DNA of 64,000 nucleotides from Octopus sinensis. Lineage: Eukaryota. Below are positions 36,584-55,787 of this stretch, piece by piece. The notes under the pieces are model-generated. The model saw only the letters and a list, made by a program, of their open reading frames with translations. It made no database searches and had not been told where the DNA came from. How positions within the stretch are numbered: the stretch's first letter is position 1; each line of letters opens with the position of its first letter. The stretch lies in assembly GCF_006345805.1 (NCBI RefSeq), contig NC_043003.1, positions 104,222,001 to 104,286,000 on the forward strand, written 5' to 3'. The position numbers and the translations under genes were made by a program.

Positions 36584-36798
36584 ATGGAGACAAACGGCTA
36601 CGAAGCAGAAGACGATCCGACCAGTGCAGCAGCAACGTCGTCGGTCAACACAACCACAACCACAACAACACTTAATAACCATAAGGCCGAGCAAGAAGCT
36701 CTGAGGGAAGCTGCGGCCATCGGTGACATTATTAAACTGCGTCAACTTGTGGAAAACTTTCATGTCGATATCAATTCGCAGAACAGTCTGAACGGATA
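36584..36798 (+). CDS. ANKRD40: ANKRD40-like gene, first coding exon 1A (METNGYEAEDD...EQEALREAAAIGDIIKLRQLVENFHVDINSQNSLNG, ends phase 2)
   Basis: ATG at 36584 in AAAATGG context. The translation resembles the ANKRD40 N-terminus (human ...LREAAALGDIREVQKLVESGVDVNSQNEVNGW, from memory). The exon ends GGA TA|GTAAGC, a strong donor; TA plus T from exon 2 gives Tyr in frame. The surroundings are CpG-rich relative to background. Confidence 0.8.
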
Positions 36799-37336
36799 GT
36801 AAGCAACAACTTACTTTTTAACCGGGTTTCGCTTTGTGAATACCTTTTTTCTTTTTAATCGGTCAATATAAGAAATATGCACGATTTATTATATGAGCTA
36901 CTCTTTGATCTTTCAGTATCTCTTATCAGATTATGTTCGATTACAAAAGTGGTTTCTATGGTCGTTTCAAAAACAAAAACTCCATTTAATCTCTCTCAAC
37001 GATTCCCTATATACATATACACAACATATATATATATATATACACACACACACACACATATATATATATACACACATATATATATATACACAAATATATA
37101 TATACACATATATATACATATATATACACACACATATATATATACACACACACATACATATATACATATATATATAGGGTGTGTGTGTATAAACATTTTA
37201 TTGTGTGTATATAAAGATTTCAGTGTATGTCTTTGAATATATATATATATATATATATATATATATATATATATATATATATATGTATATGCATATATAT
37301 ATATATAGTGTATGCATATAATATATATTATATAGT

Positions 37337-37550
37337 GTGGTCCCGGTGCGCGCTAGCTAGTCGTGACTAGTCGATCCTTACTTTGTGTTTTTGTGTTTTA
37401 TTTACTTAGTTTAACAAAAATTATTTATTATGTGTTTTATTTACTCTGCTACGTAGTCAGTCGTTGTAGGATCGAGTAGTCACGACTAGCTAGCGCGGAT
37501 GCGCGACTACGCGAGTGCGCGCACCGGGACCACTGTTCTCAAGTAGTACC
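37337..37550 (+). mobile_element. CpG-rich foldback MITE-like element, copy 2 (same orientation)
   Basis: Same inverted arms and the same 3' extension (CTGTTC.C.AGTAGTACC) as 34836-35092. Confidence 0.7.
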
Positions 37551-37819
37551 ATATATATATATATATATATAGGGTGTGTGTGTGTATAAACATTTTATTA
37601 TGTCTGTATAAAAATTTTAGCGTATGTGTTTGTATATATATATATATATATAGTATATAGTGTATGCATATAATATATATTACATAGTGTCTATCTATCT
37701 ATCTATTCACTGTTGACTGTCGGGGAAAAAAAAAGAGTACTCACTACCATAGTAAAGATTAATAACATATTTTATTTTGCCGTGTCAGTCTCTTGCTAAT
37801 CTGATTTTCACCTGTGGGG

Positions 37820-37990
37820 CCTTAATTGGATCTGATGCAAGTCATAACTTGCCTGAAGAAGACACACACAGGTGAAATGAGAACGACTCGGACCAAATTA
37901 GACGGGCATTCTTCGAAAGAATGCTGTACGGATATATGTAGGGGCCGATTTTATTTTGAGATATGTGATGCTTATATCGAAAGATGTGAA
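37820..37990 (+). mobile_element. possible degraded GIY-YIG (Penelope-like endonuclease) fragment
   Basis: DLMQVITCLKKTHTGEMRTTRTKLDGH...DICRGRF loosely follows the LIYVITC...YIGET.T.LR.R..H pattern; weak. Confidence 0.3.
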
Positions 37991-38139
37991 ATATTACTGC
38001 CCCGAACAGTCAAGTGAGACATTCCCAACCTGTTCCTTACAATGGCCGCAGTCACATGACTGAATCGAGTAAAAAATGAAAGCTATGCTATAGTGCGCAT
38101 GTACGTATAATATATGTATGTGTGTGTGTGTGTGTGTGT

Positions 38140-51891: not shown

Positions 51892-52019
51892 GTAAATATT
51901 ACACAACAAAACACGTGTACATATGTTAGAGTGTGTCTGTCTTCCTAGTGTGTGTGTGTGTGTGTGTAAACGATGATAGGGCGATCTTTCGTTTTCTTCC
52001 GGTTTTATGTCTTGTTCAA

Positions 52020-53740
52020 ATTTCCAGGTCGACTTTAGTACTTATTTTATCGATCTTTTTAGGGTCGTAATCGATTAGCCCCCCTCCTCTAATTTTCCAG
52101 GCCTTGTGCCTATAGCTGAAAGGATTATTAAAGGTGGCGGGCTGGAAGAATCGTTACCACATCAGAAAAAAATGTCTAGCGGCATTTCTTCCGACCTTAT
52201 GTTCTGAGTTCAAATCATGCTGGGGTTGATAAAATAAATACCAGTTGAATATTGGAGTTGATATAATCGACTAGTCCTCGTTCTCCGAAATTGCTGGCCT
52301 TGTGCCAAAATTTGAAATCATTATTAAGGTGGCAAGCTGGCTGAATTGTTAGCATGCTGGGCAAAATGCTCAGCTGCATTTCGTGTCTTTATGGTCTGAA
52401 CTCAAATTCGACTTCACCTTTCATCCTTTTGGGGTCAATGAAATAAGTACCTGTTGCGCACTGGGGTCAATGTAATCGACTAGCCCACTCCCCAAAAGTT
52501 CAGGCTTTGTGCCTATAATAGAAGGGATTATTGTTATTGTTATGGCAGTGATTTTCTGACTCATGAGTGTTTTAAAGAAATGTTTTGCAGTATTTGTTCT
52601 GACTCCTTAGTTTCTGAGATCAAATCCTGCAGAGGTCTACTTTGCCTTTCATCCTTCTAGGATTGATAAAATAAAGTGCCAATCAAGTACTGAGGTTCAT
52701 TGCAATCAACTAACTCCTATCAGAAATTGTTGGCTTTGTGCCTAAATTATTGTCAGGGTGGATGGCAGACACATTAGAGAGCTTCAGATAGAAGGTTTTG
52801 CAACGTTTGTTTAGGCTCTTTGCATTTTGAAATTGAATTCTGTCAAGGTCAACTTTACTTTTCATCCTTTCAGGGCCAGGGTTGATATAATTGACTAACT
52901 CTCATCTTGAAAACTGCTGGTCTTGTGTCTAATTTAGAAATTGTTGTTGAATTCAAATCCCCTGAAAATGAACTTCACCTTTCAACTCTACAGAGTCAAT
53001 AAAGTACTTGTCTTGTACTAGGGTTGATAGTATCAACTAACTCCCTTCCCCTCAGAATTGCTGGCCTTGTGAAAAAAATCAAAAATAACAACAAAACTTA
53101 GCTAGAAAAATTGTTAGCATAATTTCTTTTGGCTCTTTACACTTTGACTTCAAATTCCATTTAGGATAACTTGGCTTTTGGGGTTAATGCAACAAATACC
53201 AGTTGAATACTGGGTTTTATGTAATTGATTAACAAATTTGAAGTCTTCCAAAATTGTTGGCCTTGTGCCAAAACTAGAAACCATTATTATTATTTGAAGT
53301 GGCAAGCTGGCAGAATCATTACTGCACCGGACAAAATACATAGTAGCGATTCTTCTGTCTCTCTATATATTCTGGGTTCAAATGCTGCCGGGGTTGACTT
53401 TGCTTTTCATCCTTTCTGGGTCGATAAAGTAAGTACCAGTTGAGCACTGGGGTTGATGTAATCAACTTACCCCCTTCCCCAAACTTGCTGACCCTGTTCC
53501 AAAGTTTCAAACCGTTATTTAAGGTGACAAGCTGGCAGAATTGTTAGCACACTGGGTAAAATGCTTAGCAGCATTTCATCTGTCTTTACGTTCTAAGTTC
53601 AAATTCTACCAAGGTTGACTTTGCCTGTCATCCCTTCAAAGTCTGTAAAATAAATACCAGTTGAGAACTGTGGTCAATGTAATTGACTTAACCCTCCCCT
53701 AAAACTGCTATCTTTGTGCCAAAATTTAAAACCATTATTA
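52020..53740 (+). mobile_element. tandem cluster of the same tRNA-derived SINE family, immediately downstream of exon 1B
   Basis: Repeated GGTGGCAAGCTGGCAGAA...TTCTGAGTTCAAAT...CCTTTCATCCTTT...AAGTACCAGTTG units on the + strand; further copies at ~54390-54570. Confidence 0.8.
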
Positions 53741-54716
53741 TTATTATTATTGTTGTTGTTGTTGTTTTGAATGTGGACGGAAGTGTTTTCATAAGTTGTA
53801 AGTTTTGGGCCAATTTTCATTGGAAATATTGTTAAACCTATTGATATTTTTGTATATTTGTGTAGCCAAGCCGACTGGGCTCTTGCTGAGCTAATTAGGC
53901 AGAATTTTCCCCTTTTAGGGGTGAATTTTTCATTTTAAAACTTCAAATTTTGTTTTTGAAACTTGTAAATTTTGTCAAAATGTCTTTGAAGAGAACAGTA
54001 AGCTGTTCCCTTCTTTGTCTACCACACCCTCTGCAGATGGACAGCAAGACAAGTCGAGTGTCAAATGTGAATACGCTCTACCTGATTCACGCCTTAAAAG
54101 GCAAAGAAGATAAAGTAAAATGGTGTTCCACCTCGTGCAGCACTACTGAAGAAAATGAAGGCTGTTCTTTGGACCCCCTTTCAAATGTGGTCTCATCACC
54201 ACTATTGCTCCTACACCGGAGAAGGAGGAAGAGAGGAGTAACAACATGGCTACCAAAGAAACCAACACAGGCAACAACAAAACCCATTTTGTAATTGTTT
54301 CGCATCCGCAGCAAATCTCAGAGGAAATCAATGTTACAATGGATGAAATAAAAAAATGCAAAGGAGTTGTTAAGGAAGGATGGAAAGAATATAATCAACC
54401 AGCCTCTTCCCCCAAATTTCAGGCCTTGTGCCTATATTACAAGGGAAGAAATAATAAATGAAATAAGTCCCAGTTCTGAACCGGGTTACTGCGACTGACT
54501 TACACTTCTCCTCAAAAACTTCTGGTCCTGTGCCAAAAATTGAAACCATTATTATTAGTATCATTCTTTTTAACTCGGGGGTTTTGTTGGAATTCCTGGA
54601 GTCTTGCATGTGTAATACGCTTGCTACCTGCAGCCTACAGTACCAGACTATCTGTTCTTTTCAACTATCTAATACTTTCCTGATTATTCTGGTAATGCCA
54701 TCATCATCATCATCAT

Positions 54717-55092
54717 TATACTCTTTTACTTGTTTCAGTCATTTGATTGCAGCCATGCTGGAGCACCGCATTTAGTCGAGCAAATCGACCCCAGGACTTA
54801 TTCTTTGTTAGTCTAGTACTTATTCTGTCAGTGTCTTTTGCCAAACCGCTAAGTTGCAGGGACGTAAACACACCAGCATCAGTTGTCAAGCAATGTTGGA
54901 GGGACAAACATATACACACACATACATATATATGATGGGCTTCTTTCGGTTTCTGTCTACCAAATCCACTCACAAGGCTTTGGTTGGCCCGAGGCTATAG
55001 TAGAAGACACTTGCCCAAGGTGCCACGCAGTGGGATTGAACCCGGAACCATGTGGTTCGTATGCAAGTTACTTACCACACAGCCACTCCTAC
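54717..55092 (-). mobile_element. tRNA-derived SINE (OK-type), antisense in intron 1
   Basis: Reverse complement of the 30867-31280 family; a further antisense partial copy is at ~61790-61935. Confidence 0.85.
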
Positions 55093-55638
55093 ACCTAAGA
55101 CAGAAACAGTTGAACTCTTGACAACAACATTGCAGTATTTAGTTGTGTAAAGTGACTGGAATAGTTGAGACTAAAACCAGTCTTTTGTCTTCATGTTTTG
55201 TACTTTAAATGATACTATGGTTGACTACTTTTCACTTTCCTGAGGTCAATAGAATAAATACCGGTCAAGTTAGTATTATGGATTTTACAGTTCCTGAAGA
55301 TTTGCTGCCAAAGCTAGTAATCGTTATAATTATATCCTTATTGTTTACTTGGAGATGGTCATATTTTGCCAATTAAACATGCACACACTATACATTTGAT
55401 CTTCACTTCAGCTTTATTATTATTATTATTTTAGTCTCTTAGTCCAAGCTCTTTCCACACACATCCTGAGACCTCTTCAGCAACTCTAACTCACATGTCT
55501 ACTCTTATTCTTTAATTGGCAAACTATGACCATCCTTATCTATAATTATAACTATCTGTATCTATGATTTCTTGTCAAGATTCTTCCAAAACAAATACAT
55601 ATCATTATTTTTTATTTATTCATTTATTTTAATTTCAG

Positions 55639-55787
55639 TACTGCTTTGCACTGGGCTACCATTAGAAACCATACATCTGTTGTTGCTTTCCTTTTGACAC
55701 ATGGTGCAGATAAAAATATAAAAAATTTCGATGGTAACATCCCTGCTGAATTAACATCAGACTCCACCATACATCAGTTACTGGGAG
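55639..55787 (+). CDS. ANKRD40: ANKRD40-like exon 2, ankyrin repeat (TALHWATIRNHTSVVAFLLTHGADKNIKNFDGNIPAELTSDSTIHQLLG), phase 2 in, phase 1 out
   Basis: Acceptor TTTTAATTTCAG| at 55638 and donor G|GTAAGT at 55788. Canonical ankyrin consensus TALHWA...LL..GAD.N. The 149 nt are 1 nt, 49 codons and 1 nt, in frame with both 1A and 1B. Confidence 0.88.

Follow-up and report, generated by a model that had tools for sequence, protein, structure and literature searches.

The question raised by this locus was whether two related start exons, lying 15 kb apart and both reading into one ankyrin exon, represent two genes, or one gene with a choice of N-terminus. The window (i.e., the whole stretch analysed, 64,000 nucleotides of Octopus sinensis contig NC_043003.1, positions 104,222,001 to 104,286,000) was 100% identical to O. 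sinensis CM016865.1 (window position = L006 position + 31583), and the exons concerned belong to ANKRD40, which encodes ankyrin repeat domain-containing protein 40. Very probably, there is one O. sinensis ANKRD40 orthologue, in which the ancestral first exon was duplicated in tandem in octopods, and both copies (1A and 1B) serve as alternative first exons.

Exons 1A and 1B each stop at a GT donor after the second base of a codon, and both are in frame with exon 2, the single exon beginning at 55639; the junction codons are TA/T (Tyr) for 1A and TG/T (Cys) for 1B. Both joins translated without a stop, into ...TALHWATIRNH..., and exon 1B was preceded by an in-frame stop 13 codons upstream of its start. 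The product of exon 2 (TALHWA...) comprises ankyrin (ANK) repeat 2 and the beginning of a partial third repeat. When spliced to exons 2-4, exon 1A gave an exact match to the first 235 residues of XP_029638664.1 ('ankyrin repeat domain-containing protein 40 isoform X1', 336 amino acids, 1A-type), while exon 1B matched the first 216 residues of XP_029638665.1 (ANKRD40 'isoform X2', 317 amino acids, 1B-type) exactly. The range annotated for the gene's longest product has the 1A ATG as its exact start and extends ~1.26 kb beyond the window end. An earlier note on this DNA had read these exons ab initio, and its reading was accurate to the base; all of its coordinates and its statements on phase, donors and frame held, as did its proposal of one gene with a duplicated first exon. 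It had also found no second TALHWA exon between 1A and 1B, and no second exon-2-like sequence was identified in the 64 kb window by tblastn, the best other match being to a low-complexity repeat (E = 0.47). Nor was any other ANKRD40-like exon present in the interval between 1A and 1B, and the window contained no runs of N.

The paralogy of 1A and 1B, likewise claimed beforehand, was borne out when the exon peptides were compared with the window by tblastn: 19/33 residues were identical (57.6%, E = 5e-7), while the next-best window matches to either peptide had E values above 2. Nucleotide identity was 62.5%, with second codon positions the most conserved, and the exons end at the same codon position. 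Over 33 positions, the helix pairs encoded by the two exons were distinguished by 13 substitutions and an indel of one residue.

Profile searches showed that the nearest relatives of the protein are the ANKRD40 of molluscs, Lingula and vertebrates (E values from 1e-58 to 1e-167). PF27687 (ANKRD40_UBL) matched the full-length O. sinensis, Argonauta hians and O. bimaculoides products; the local copy of Pfam was without this family, and the C-terminal domain call consists of precomputed matches. The first protein search, using 1A plus exon 2, returned only the 1B-type model of O. bimaculoides and a bacterial ankyrin protein, and missed the identical RefSeq protein owing to a lossy word index. An exhaustive search of representative sequences was dominated by giant multi-ankyrin proteins, nine of the 150 matches listed being ANKRD40-like, among them that of Argonauta. 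Exact look-ups of P0001 (A0A0L8HHF2), P0275 and P0171 found none on record, which fits shorter products being held under a longer isoform and is not proof of it.

Annotation of O. bimaculoides likewise includes both isoforms (XP_014772291.1 and XP_014772292.1). For O. vulgaris, three products carry consecutive accessions (CAI9726276-78), of which two are 1A-type and one 1B-type; the annotators of that genome used PASA to add alternative forms, on the basis of assembled Iso-Seq and RNA-seq data (PMC10700109). The gene models of O. sinensis, O. bimaculoides, O. vulgaris and A. hians all connect 1A to exon 2, and both joins are seen in gene models of three or four species; the RefSeq ANKRD40 models of the three Octopus species are identical in structure to the reading given here. 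The two-isoform architecture is already public in RefSeq and ENA annotation, and hence is not new, although the earlier note knew of no such case for ANKRD40 elsewhere. The annotation is silent on the paralogy of the first exons, the dating of the duplication and the constraint imposed by the split codon. No paper on ANKRD40 and octopus was recovered from the literature library searched; to judge from titles and abstracts, gene architecture is not a subject of the ANKRD40 papers listed.

The order 1A-1B-exon 2, the phases and the donor sequences were alike in four independent octopod assemblies, including that of A. hians. In the A. hians locus (L001), exon 1A occupies 10001-10203, ends in TT and has the donor GTAAGC; exon 1B (14645-14796) is unannotated but intact, with an ATG, TG at its end and the donor GTAAAT; and the first base of exon 2 is at 16055. 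The annotated A. hians product, GAB1598421.1, is 1A-type. The spacing between 1A and 1B is 4.6 kb in this species, compared with 15 kb in O. sinensis. When the two loci were compared by blastn, colinear matches occurred at exons 1A, 1B, 2, 3 and 4 only, and the introns could not be aligned. The ratio of nonsynonymous to synonymous substitution rates (dN/dS, Nei-Gojobori) between O. sinensis and A. hians, a calculation that the earlier note had proposed for each exon, was 0.14 for 1A, 0.06 for 1B and 0.06 for exon 2 (Fisher p about 2e-9 for 1A and 4e-9 for 1B, with synonymous sites near saturation). In four species across the Octopus-Argonauta split, neither first exon had lost its ATG, open frame, phase or consensus donor, and all indels within the tails were in frame, i.e., multiples of three. 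Exons 1A and 1B are both coding and under purifying selection. Approximately 13 positions, including the junction residue, differed between the two exon types but were invariant within each type across Octopus and Argonauta, which hints at type-specific constraint. In O. vulgaris, exon 1B (L007 18595-18734) has an in-frame deletion of 18 nucleotides relative to O. sinensis, which removes six residues of the tail.

Table 1. Coding exons of ANKRD40 and the interval between its first exons, in window coordinates.
Feature	Position	Strand	Remarks
Exon 1A, distal alternative first coding exon	36584..36798	+	215 nt; ATG at 36584; donor GTAAGC; ends TA; starts X1
1A-1B interval, upstream part of X1 intron 1	36799..51733	+	Repeat-filled
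Exon 1B, proximal alternative first coding exon	51734..51891	+	158 nt; ATG at 51734; donor GTAAAT; ends TG; starts X2
Exon 2, common acceptor exon	55639..55787	+	Acceptor ...TTTCAG at 55638/55639; donor GTAAGT; first base T
Exon 3, linker exon with LPI.PNYL..P.FP motif	58594..58761	+	Boundaries reproduce X1 and X2; paralogous to exon 4
Exon 4, tandem duplicate of exon 3	61199..61372	+	Same phase and same donor GTTAGTAG as exon 3; in both isoforms
Last exon, ubiquitin-like domain	about 64953-65258		Outside the window, past its end

Among the outgroups examined there was one exon 1 and one linker exon, while O. sinensis and Argonauta have two of each. The Sepia pharaonis locus (42.7 kb, no Ns) contained a single exon 1 and no 1B-like sequence; the Pinctada imbricata locus contained a single exon 1 within a four-exon gene; and the Patella vulgata locus contained a single exon-1 sequence within a gene lacking introns. 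In Sepia, an intron splits the same codon after ...NG, and the first intron of Pinctada is found at the same place. Exon 1A was more similar to Sepia exon 1 (23/33) than was 1B (17/32), and the nearest non-1B sequence to 1B was octopod 1A itself (19/32; others 11-18/32). A relative-rate test, with Sepia as outgroup, counted one unique change in 1A against seven in 1B (p = 0.03). The duplication of exon 1 was therefore probably octopod-specific, and on the simplest reading of these comparisons it occurred in tandem after the decapodiform split and before the split between Octopus and Argonauta; 1A appears to be the conservative copy, and 1B a faster-evolving copy that is yet equally constrained today. 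The dating proposed in the earlier note was accomplished in part, with both exons placed in Argonauta and one exon 1 in Sepia and Pinctada, but with a single locus standing for the decapodiforms. The ANKRD40 of Patella vulgata forms one uninterrupted open reading frame (L009 10001-10795), in contrast to the four or more coding exons of its orthologues in bivalves and cephalopods, and is best read as intron loss or replacement by a retrogene.

The codon split between exons 1 and 2 differs between Sepia and the octopods. In Sepia, exon 1 ends in TG and exon 2 begins with G, so encoding Trp (TG/G), and this join was confirmed by a Sepia transcript contig. The first base of exon 2 is G in Sepia and T in all four octopods. 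Exon 1B kept the ancestral TG, giving Cys in all four octopods, while the junction residue of 1A is Tyr (TA) in Octopus and Phe (TT) in Argonauta. Because the T at the start of exon 2 is common to both isoforms, neither can encode Trp (TGG). The position concerned is the x of the G-x-T-[PA]-L-H motif; most of the ANKRD40 orthologues sampled have Trp here (vertebrates, Lingula and Sepia among them), and caenogastropods have Arg. The earlier note had placed Tyr and Cys at a Trp position of ANKRD40 by reference to the human protein, and the wider sample agrees with this. In designed ankyrin repeat proteins (DARPins), the corresponding position is among those randomised for target contact.

Both spliced N-termini matched Pfam Ank, Ank_2, Ank_3 and Ank_4 above the curated cut-offs. 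The tail encoded by 1A is disordered and rich in Thr, Ala and Ser, and is followed by ANK helix pair 1 and a loop to Gly71; that of 1B is short and rich in Gln, Asn and Asp, followed by a diverged helix pair 1 and loop. The difference in tail composition had been anticipated. The AlphaFold2 model of X1 placed helices at residues 25-46 and 49-58, then Tyr72, then helices at 74-80 and 84-92; that of the 1B-type protein placed helices at 15-28 and 31-39, then Cys53, then helices at 55-61 and 65-73. In both models, the predicted local distance difference test score (pLDDT) exceeded 90 in the structured regions and was low in the tails. The best Foldseek matches were to ankyrin-repeat proteins and DARPins, with root-mean-square deviations of 0.8-1.5 A over about 88 columns. 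The choice of first exon is thus predicted to replace the first (capping) helix pair as a whole, together with the disordered tail and the loop that leads to repeat 2, and not half of the first ANK repeat as the earlier note had supposed. X1 and X2 have in common ANK repeat 2, two PNYL linker exons and the C-terminal ubiquitin-like domain, for which AlphaFold2 predicted a beta-grasp-like pattern of strands and helices at residues 236-320. The order of ANK repeats, PNYL linker and ANKRD40_UBL is the same in the ANKRD40 of vertebrates, Lingula, gastropods, bivalves and Sepia pharaonis (CAE1332342.1).

Upstream of the 1B start codon, no AG acceptor was found at which a splice from 1A would stay in frame, and no isoform containing both 1A and 1B is annotated. 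Within the coding sequence of 1B there were only two frame-keeping AGs, neither of them preceded by a pyrimidine tract. Inclusion of the exons in tandem (1A-1B-exon 2) was rejected on reading-frame grounds; therefore, 1A and 1B are mutually exclusive. A CpG-dense patch covered exon 1A (36401..36900, 17-18 CpG per 300 bp, against a window median of 3) and another covered exon 1B and its upstream flank (51601..51900, 17 CpG per 300 bp), while the internal exons 2-4 had 0-6 CpG per 300 bp. These patches are compatible with one promoter at 1A and a second at 1B. Further patches were seen at 34801-35300 and 37301-37700 (18 CpG per 300 bp, observed/expected 1.4-1.8), such that the CpG-rich zone around 1A spans about 3 kb, on both flanks. 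The history and use of the locus are very probably as follows: octopods underwent a tandem duplication of the ancestral first coding exon of ANKRD40 and have retained the two copies as alternative, mutually exclusive first exons; transcription most likely starts at one of two promoters, and the chosen first exon is spliced to the common exon 2, to give either X1 (336 amino acids) or X2 (317 amino acids), which differ in the tail, the capping helix pair and the split-codon residue (Tyr or Cys). The promoters would be separate, their use might be specific to tissue or stage, and X1 and X2 might have different binding partners.

Several points weigh against this account. No Logan transcript fragment with either octopod N-terminus was found, and a profile search restricted to the two N-termini recovered no transcript-derived octopod fragments from protein databases; support for the junctions 36798->55639 and 51891->55639 is confined to gene models. 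RefSeq X isoforms are predictions, for which the NCBI pipeline requires transcript support. The CpG peaks are no more than suggestive, and comparable ones are found at repeats in other parts of the window. Upstream of 1A there are an open frame and a candidate AG acceptor, such that a non-coding leader exon may precede it. For the timing of the duplication, the decapodiforms are represented by a single locus, which included 10 kb of flanking sequence upstream. To our knowledge, ANKRD40 has no established function, and a functional difference between X1 and X2 is hypothetical. That no transcript-derived fragment with either octopod N-terminus was found would be compatible with 1A or 1B being a non-functional relic, and the isoform using it a homology-driven prediction rather than a real mRNA; the 2015 UniProt model of O. 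bimaculoides, moreover, has 1B only. This is very improbable. Constraint on both exons shows that both are coding, and argues against either being a relic: the start codon, frame, phase and donor were kept from Octopus to Argonauta, dN/dS was low despite saturated synonymous sites and unalignable flanking introns, every tail indel was a multiple of three, and the alternative forms of O. vulgaris came from transcript assemblies (PMC10700109). A different objection is that 1A is foreign to the gene of exon 2, either because there are two separate paralogous genes or through a misjoin or collapse in the assembly, as the earlier note had allowed. Assembly errors typically arise at features such as the 2-kb (TA)n array and the transposon fragments found within the 15 kb between 1A and 1B. 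Yet the window is free of N runs, there was no second exon-2-like sequence in it or in any of the four octopod loci, the spacing in Argonauta is just 4.6 kb, and the models of all four species join 1A to exon 2; the recurrence of the same order in four independent assemblies therefore excludes a misjoin or collapse, and the objection as a whole has a next to negligible chance of being right. That the duplication is older than octopods (coleoid or earlier), with 1B lost in the cuttlefish lineage or lying beyond the stretch examined, is improbable, if less so than the preceding two alternatives. It would accord with the small decapodiform sample, and with the absence from 1B of the extra residue of 1A and Sepia, like the ...GVDVNSQ... 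form of heterobranch gastropods, Lingula and vertebrates; but this one-residue length difference varies repeatedly among molluscs, 1A is the closest of all non-1B sequences to 1B, and there was no second copy in the Sepia or Pinctada loci, Patella having a single intronless gene.

Given one gene with duplicated first exons, the consequences of the choice between them can be viewed in two ways. The architecture may be real but regulatory only, with two promoters, different expression and interchangeable N-termini; this is plausible, if short of probable. Both versions are predicted to adopt the same capping ANK repeat fold, the tails are disordered, quickly evolving and subject to indels, and the CpG peaks at both exons suggest two promoters. 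However, the type-specific fixed positions of the helix pair, with the junction residue among them, form the pattern expected under separate constraint, and the position in DARPins that corresponds to the junction is among those randomised for target contact. These observations would suit a second view, in which the first exons became functionally distinct modules after the octopod-specific duplication: a G-to-T change at the first base of exon 2 would have removed the widely conserved Trp from X1 and X2 alike, 1A would have regained an aromatic residue (TA/T, Tyr, in Octopus; TT/T, Phe, in Argonauta), and 1B would have kept Cys since the split, such that promoter choice would select an ANKRD40 with different partners, possibly by tissue. 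On balance this more elaborate proposal is doubtful.

The linker exons represent a second tandem exon duplication within the ANKRD40 gene. Exons 3 and 4 share 58.6% amino acid identity; their lengths are multiples of three, they have the same phase and the common donor GTTAGTAG, and both are present in X1 and X2. Exon 3 encodes ...LPIHPNYLAHPVFP..., of which exon 4 encodes a diverged copy, and the columns of the LPI.PNYL..P.FP motif were nearly invariant across orthologues in an alignment of 37 sequences. There are two copies of the linker exon in Argonauta, and one in Sepia pharaonis and Pinctada. In the O. bimaculoides product A0A0L8HHF2 (203 amino acids) both linker exons are skipped, exon 2 being joined directly to the exon for the ubiquitin-like domain; linker-less isoforms of 203-204 amino acids are annotated also in two turtles and the guinea pig, and linker skipping may be a recurrent or conserved splice option. 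The O. vulgaris product CAI9726276.1 (1A-type, 342 amino acids) differs in its C-terminal peptide, and thus may have an alternative 3' end.

The introns and flanks of the gene contain repeats and the remains of transposons. An imperfect (TA)n array of ~2 kb (38141-40100, 993 copies, 70% matches) accounts for a trough in G-C content of 0.13; an assembly gap at 38-40 kb, suspected from this trough, was rejected given the array and the absence of Ns. Additional (TA)n/(TATG)n arrays occupy 44762-45707 and 46375-46955. Fragments of DDE_1 (pogo/Tigger-like) transposase were found upstream of the gene (20567-21448, minus strand) and in intron 2 (56421-56996, plus strand), and the C-terminal protein sequences of the two copies are nearly identical. 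Retroelement debris comprised an RVT_1 reverse-transcriptase fragment within the 1A-1B interval (43126-43581, plus strand) and a weak rve (integrase-core) match upstream of 1A (33341-33868, plus strand). A short dispersed repeat, resembling a short interspersed element and common to O. sinensis and A. hians, occurs in several ANKRD40 introns of both species, with copies at 40503-40560, 48718-48865, 55820-55966 and 56169-56219 in the window, and at about 5270-5430, 17270-17417, 18068-18114 and 20166-20320 in A. hians (L001).

The variable first exons of the clustered protocadherins and of UGT1A are textbook alternative first exons produced by tandem exon duplication, and the octopus exons are of this ordinary kind. 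As in those systems, paralogous 5' exons of the same phase are joined to a common downstream exon, one per transcript, and each first exon is presumed to have its own promoter. Octopus ANKRD40 differs in having two copies only, in varying a capping ANK repeat rather than a whole extracellular or catalytic domain, and in that its promoter choice is one that we infer. What has been added to the existing annotation is small: the paralogy of the first exons through a duplication in the octopod lineage, the duplication of the linker exon, and the common base that explains the loss of Trp. Its significance outside ANKRD40 is small also. However, because ANKRD40 is without established function, a pair of isoforms that swaps only the capping ankyrin repeat could be a handle on the partners of this protein.

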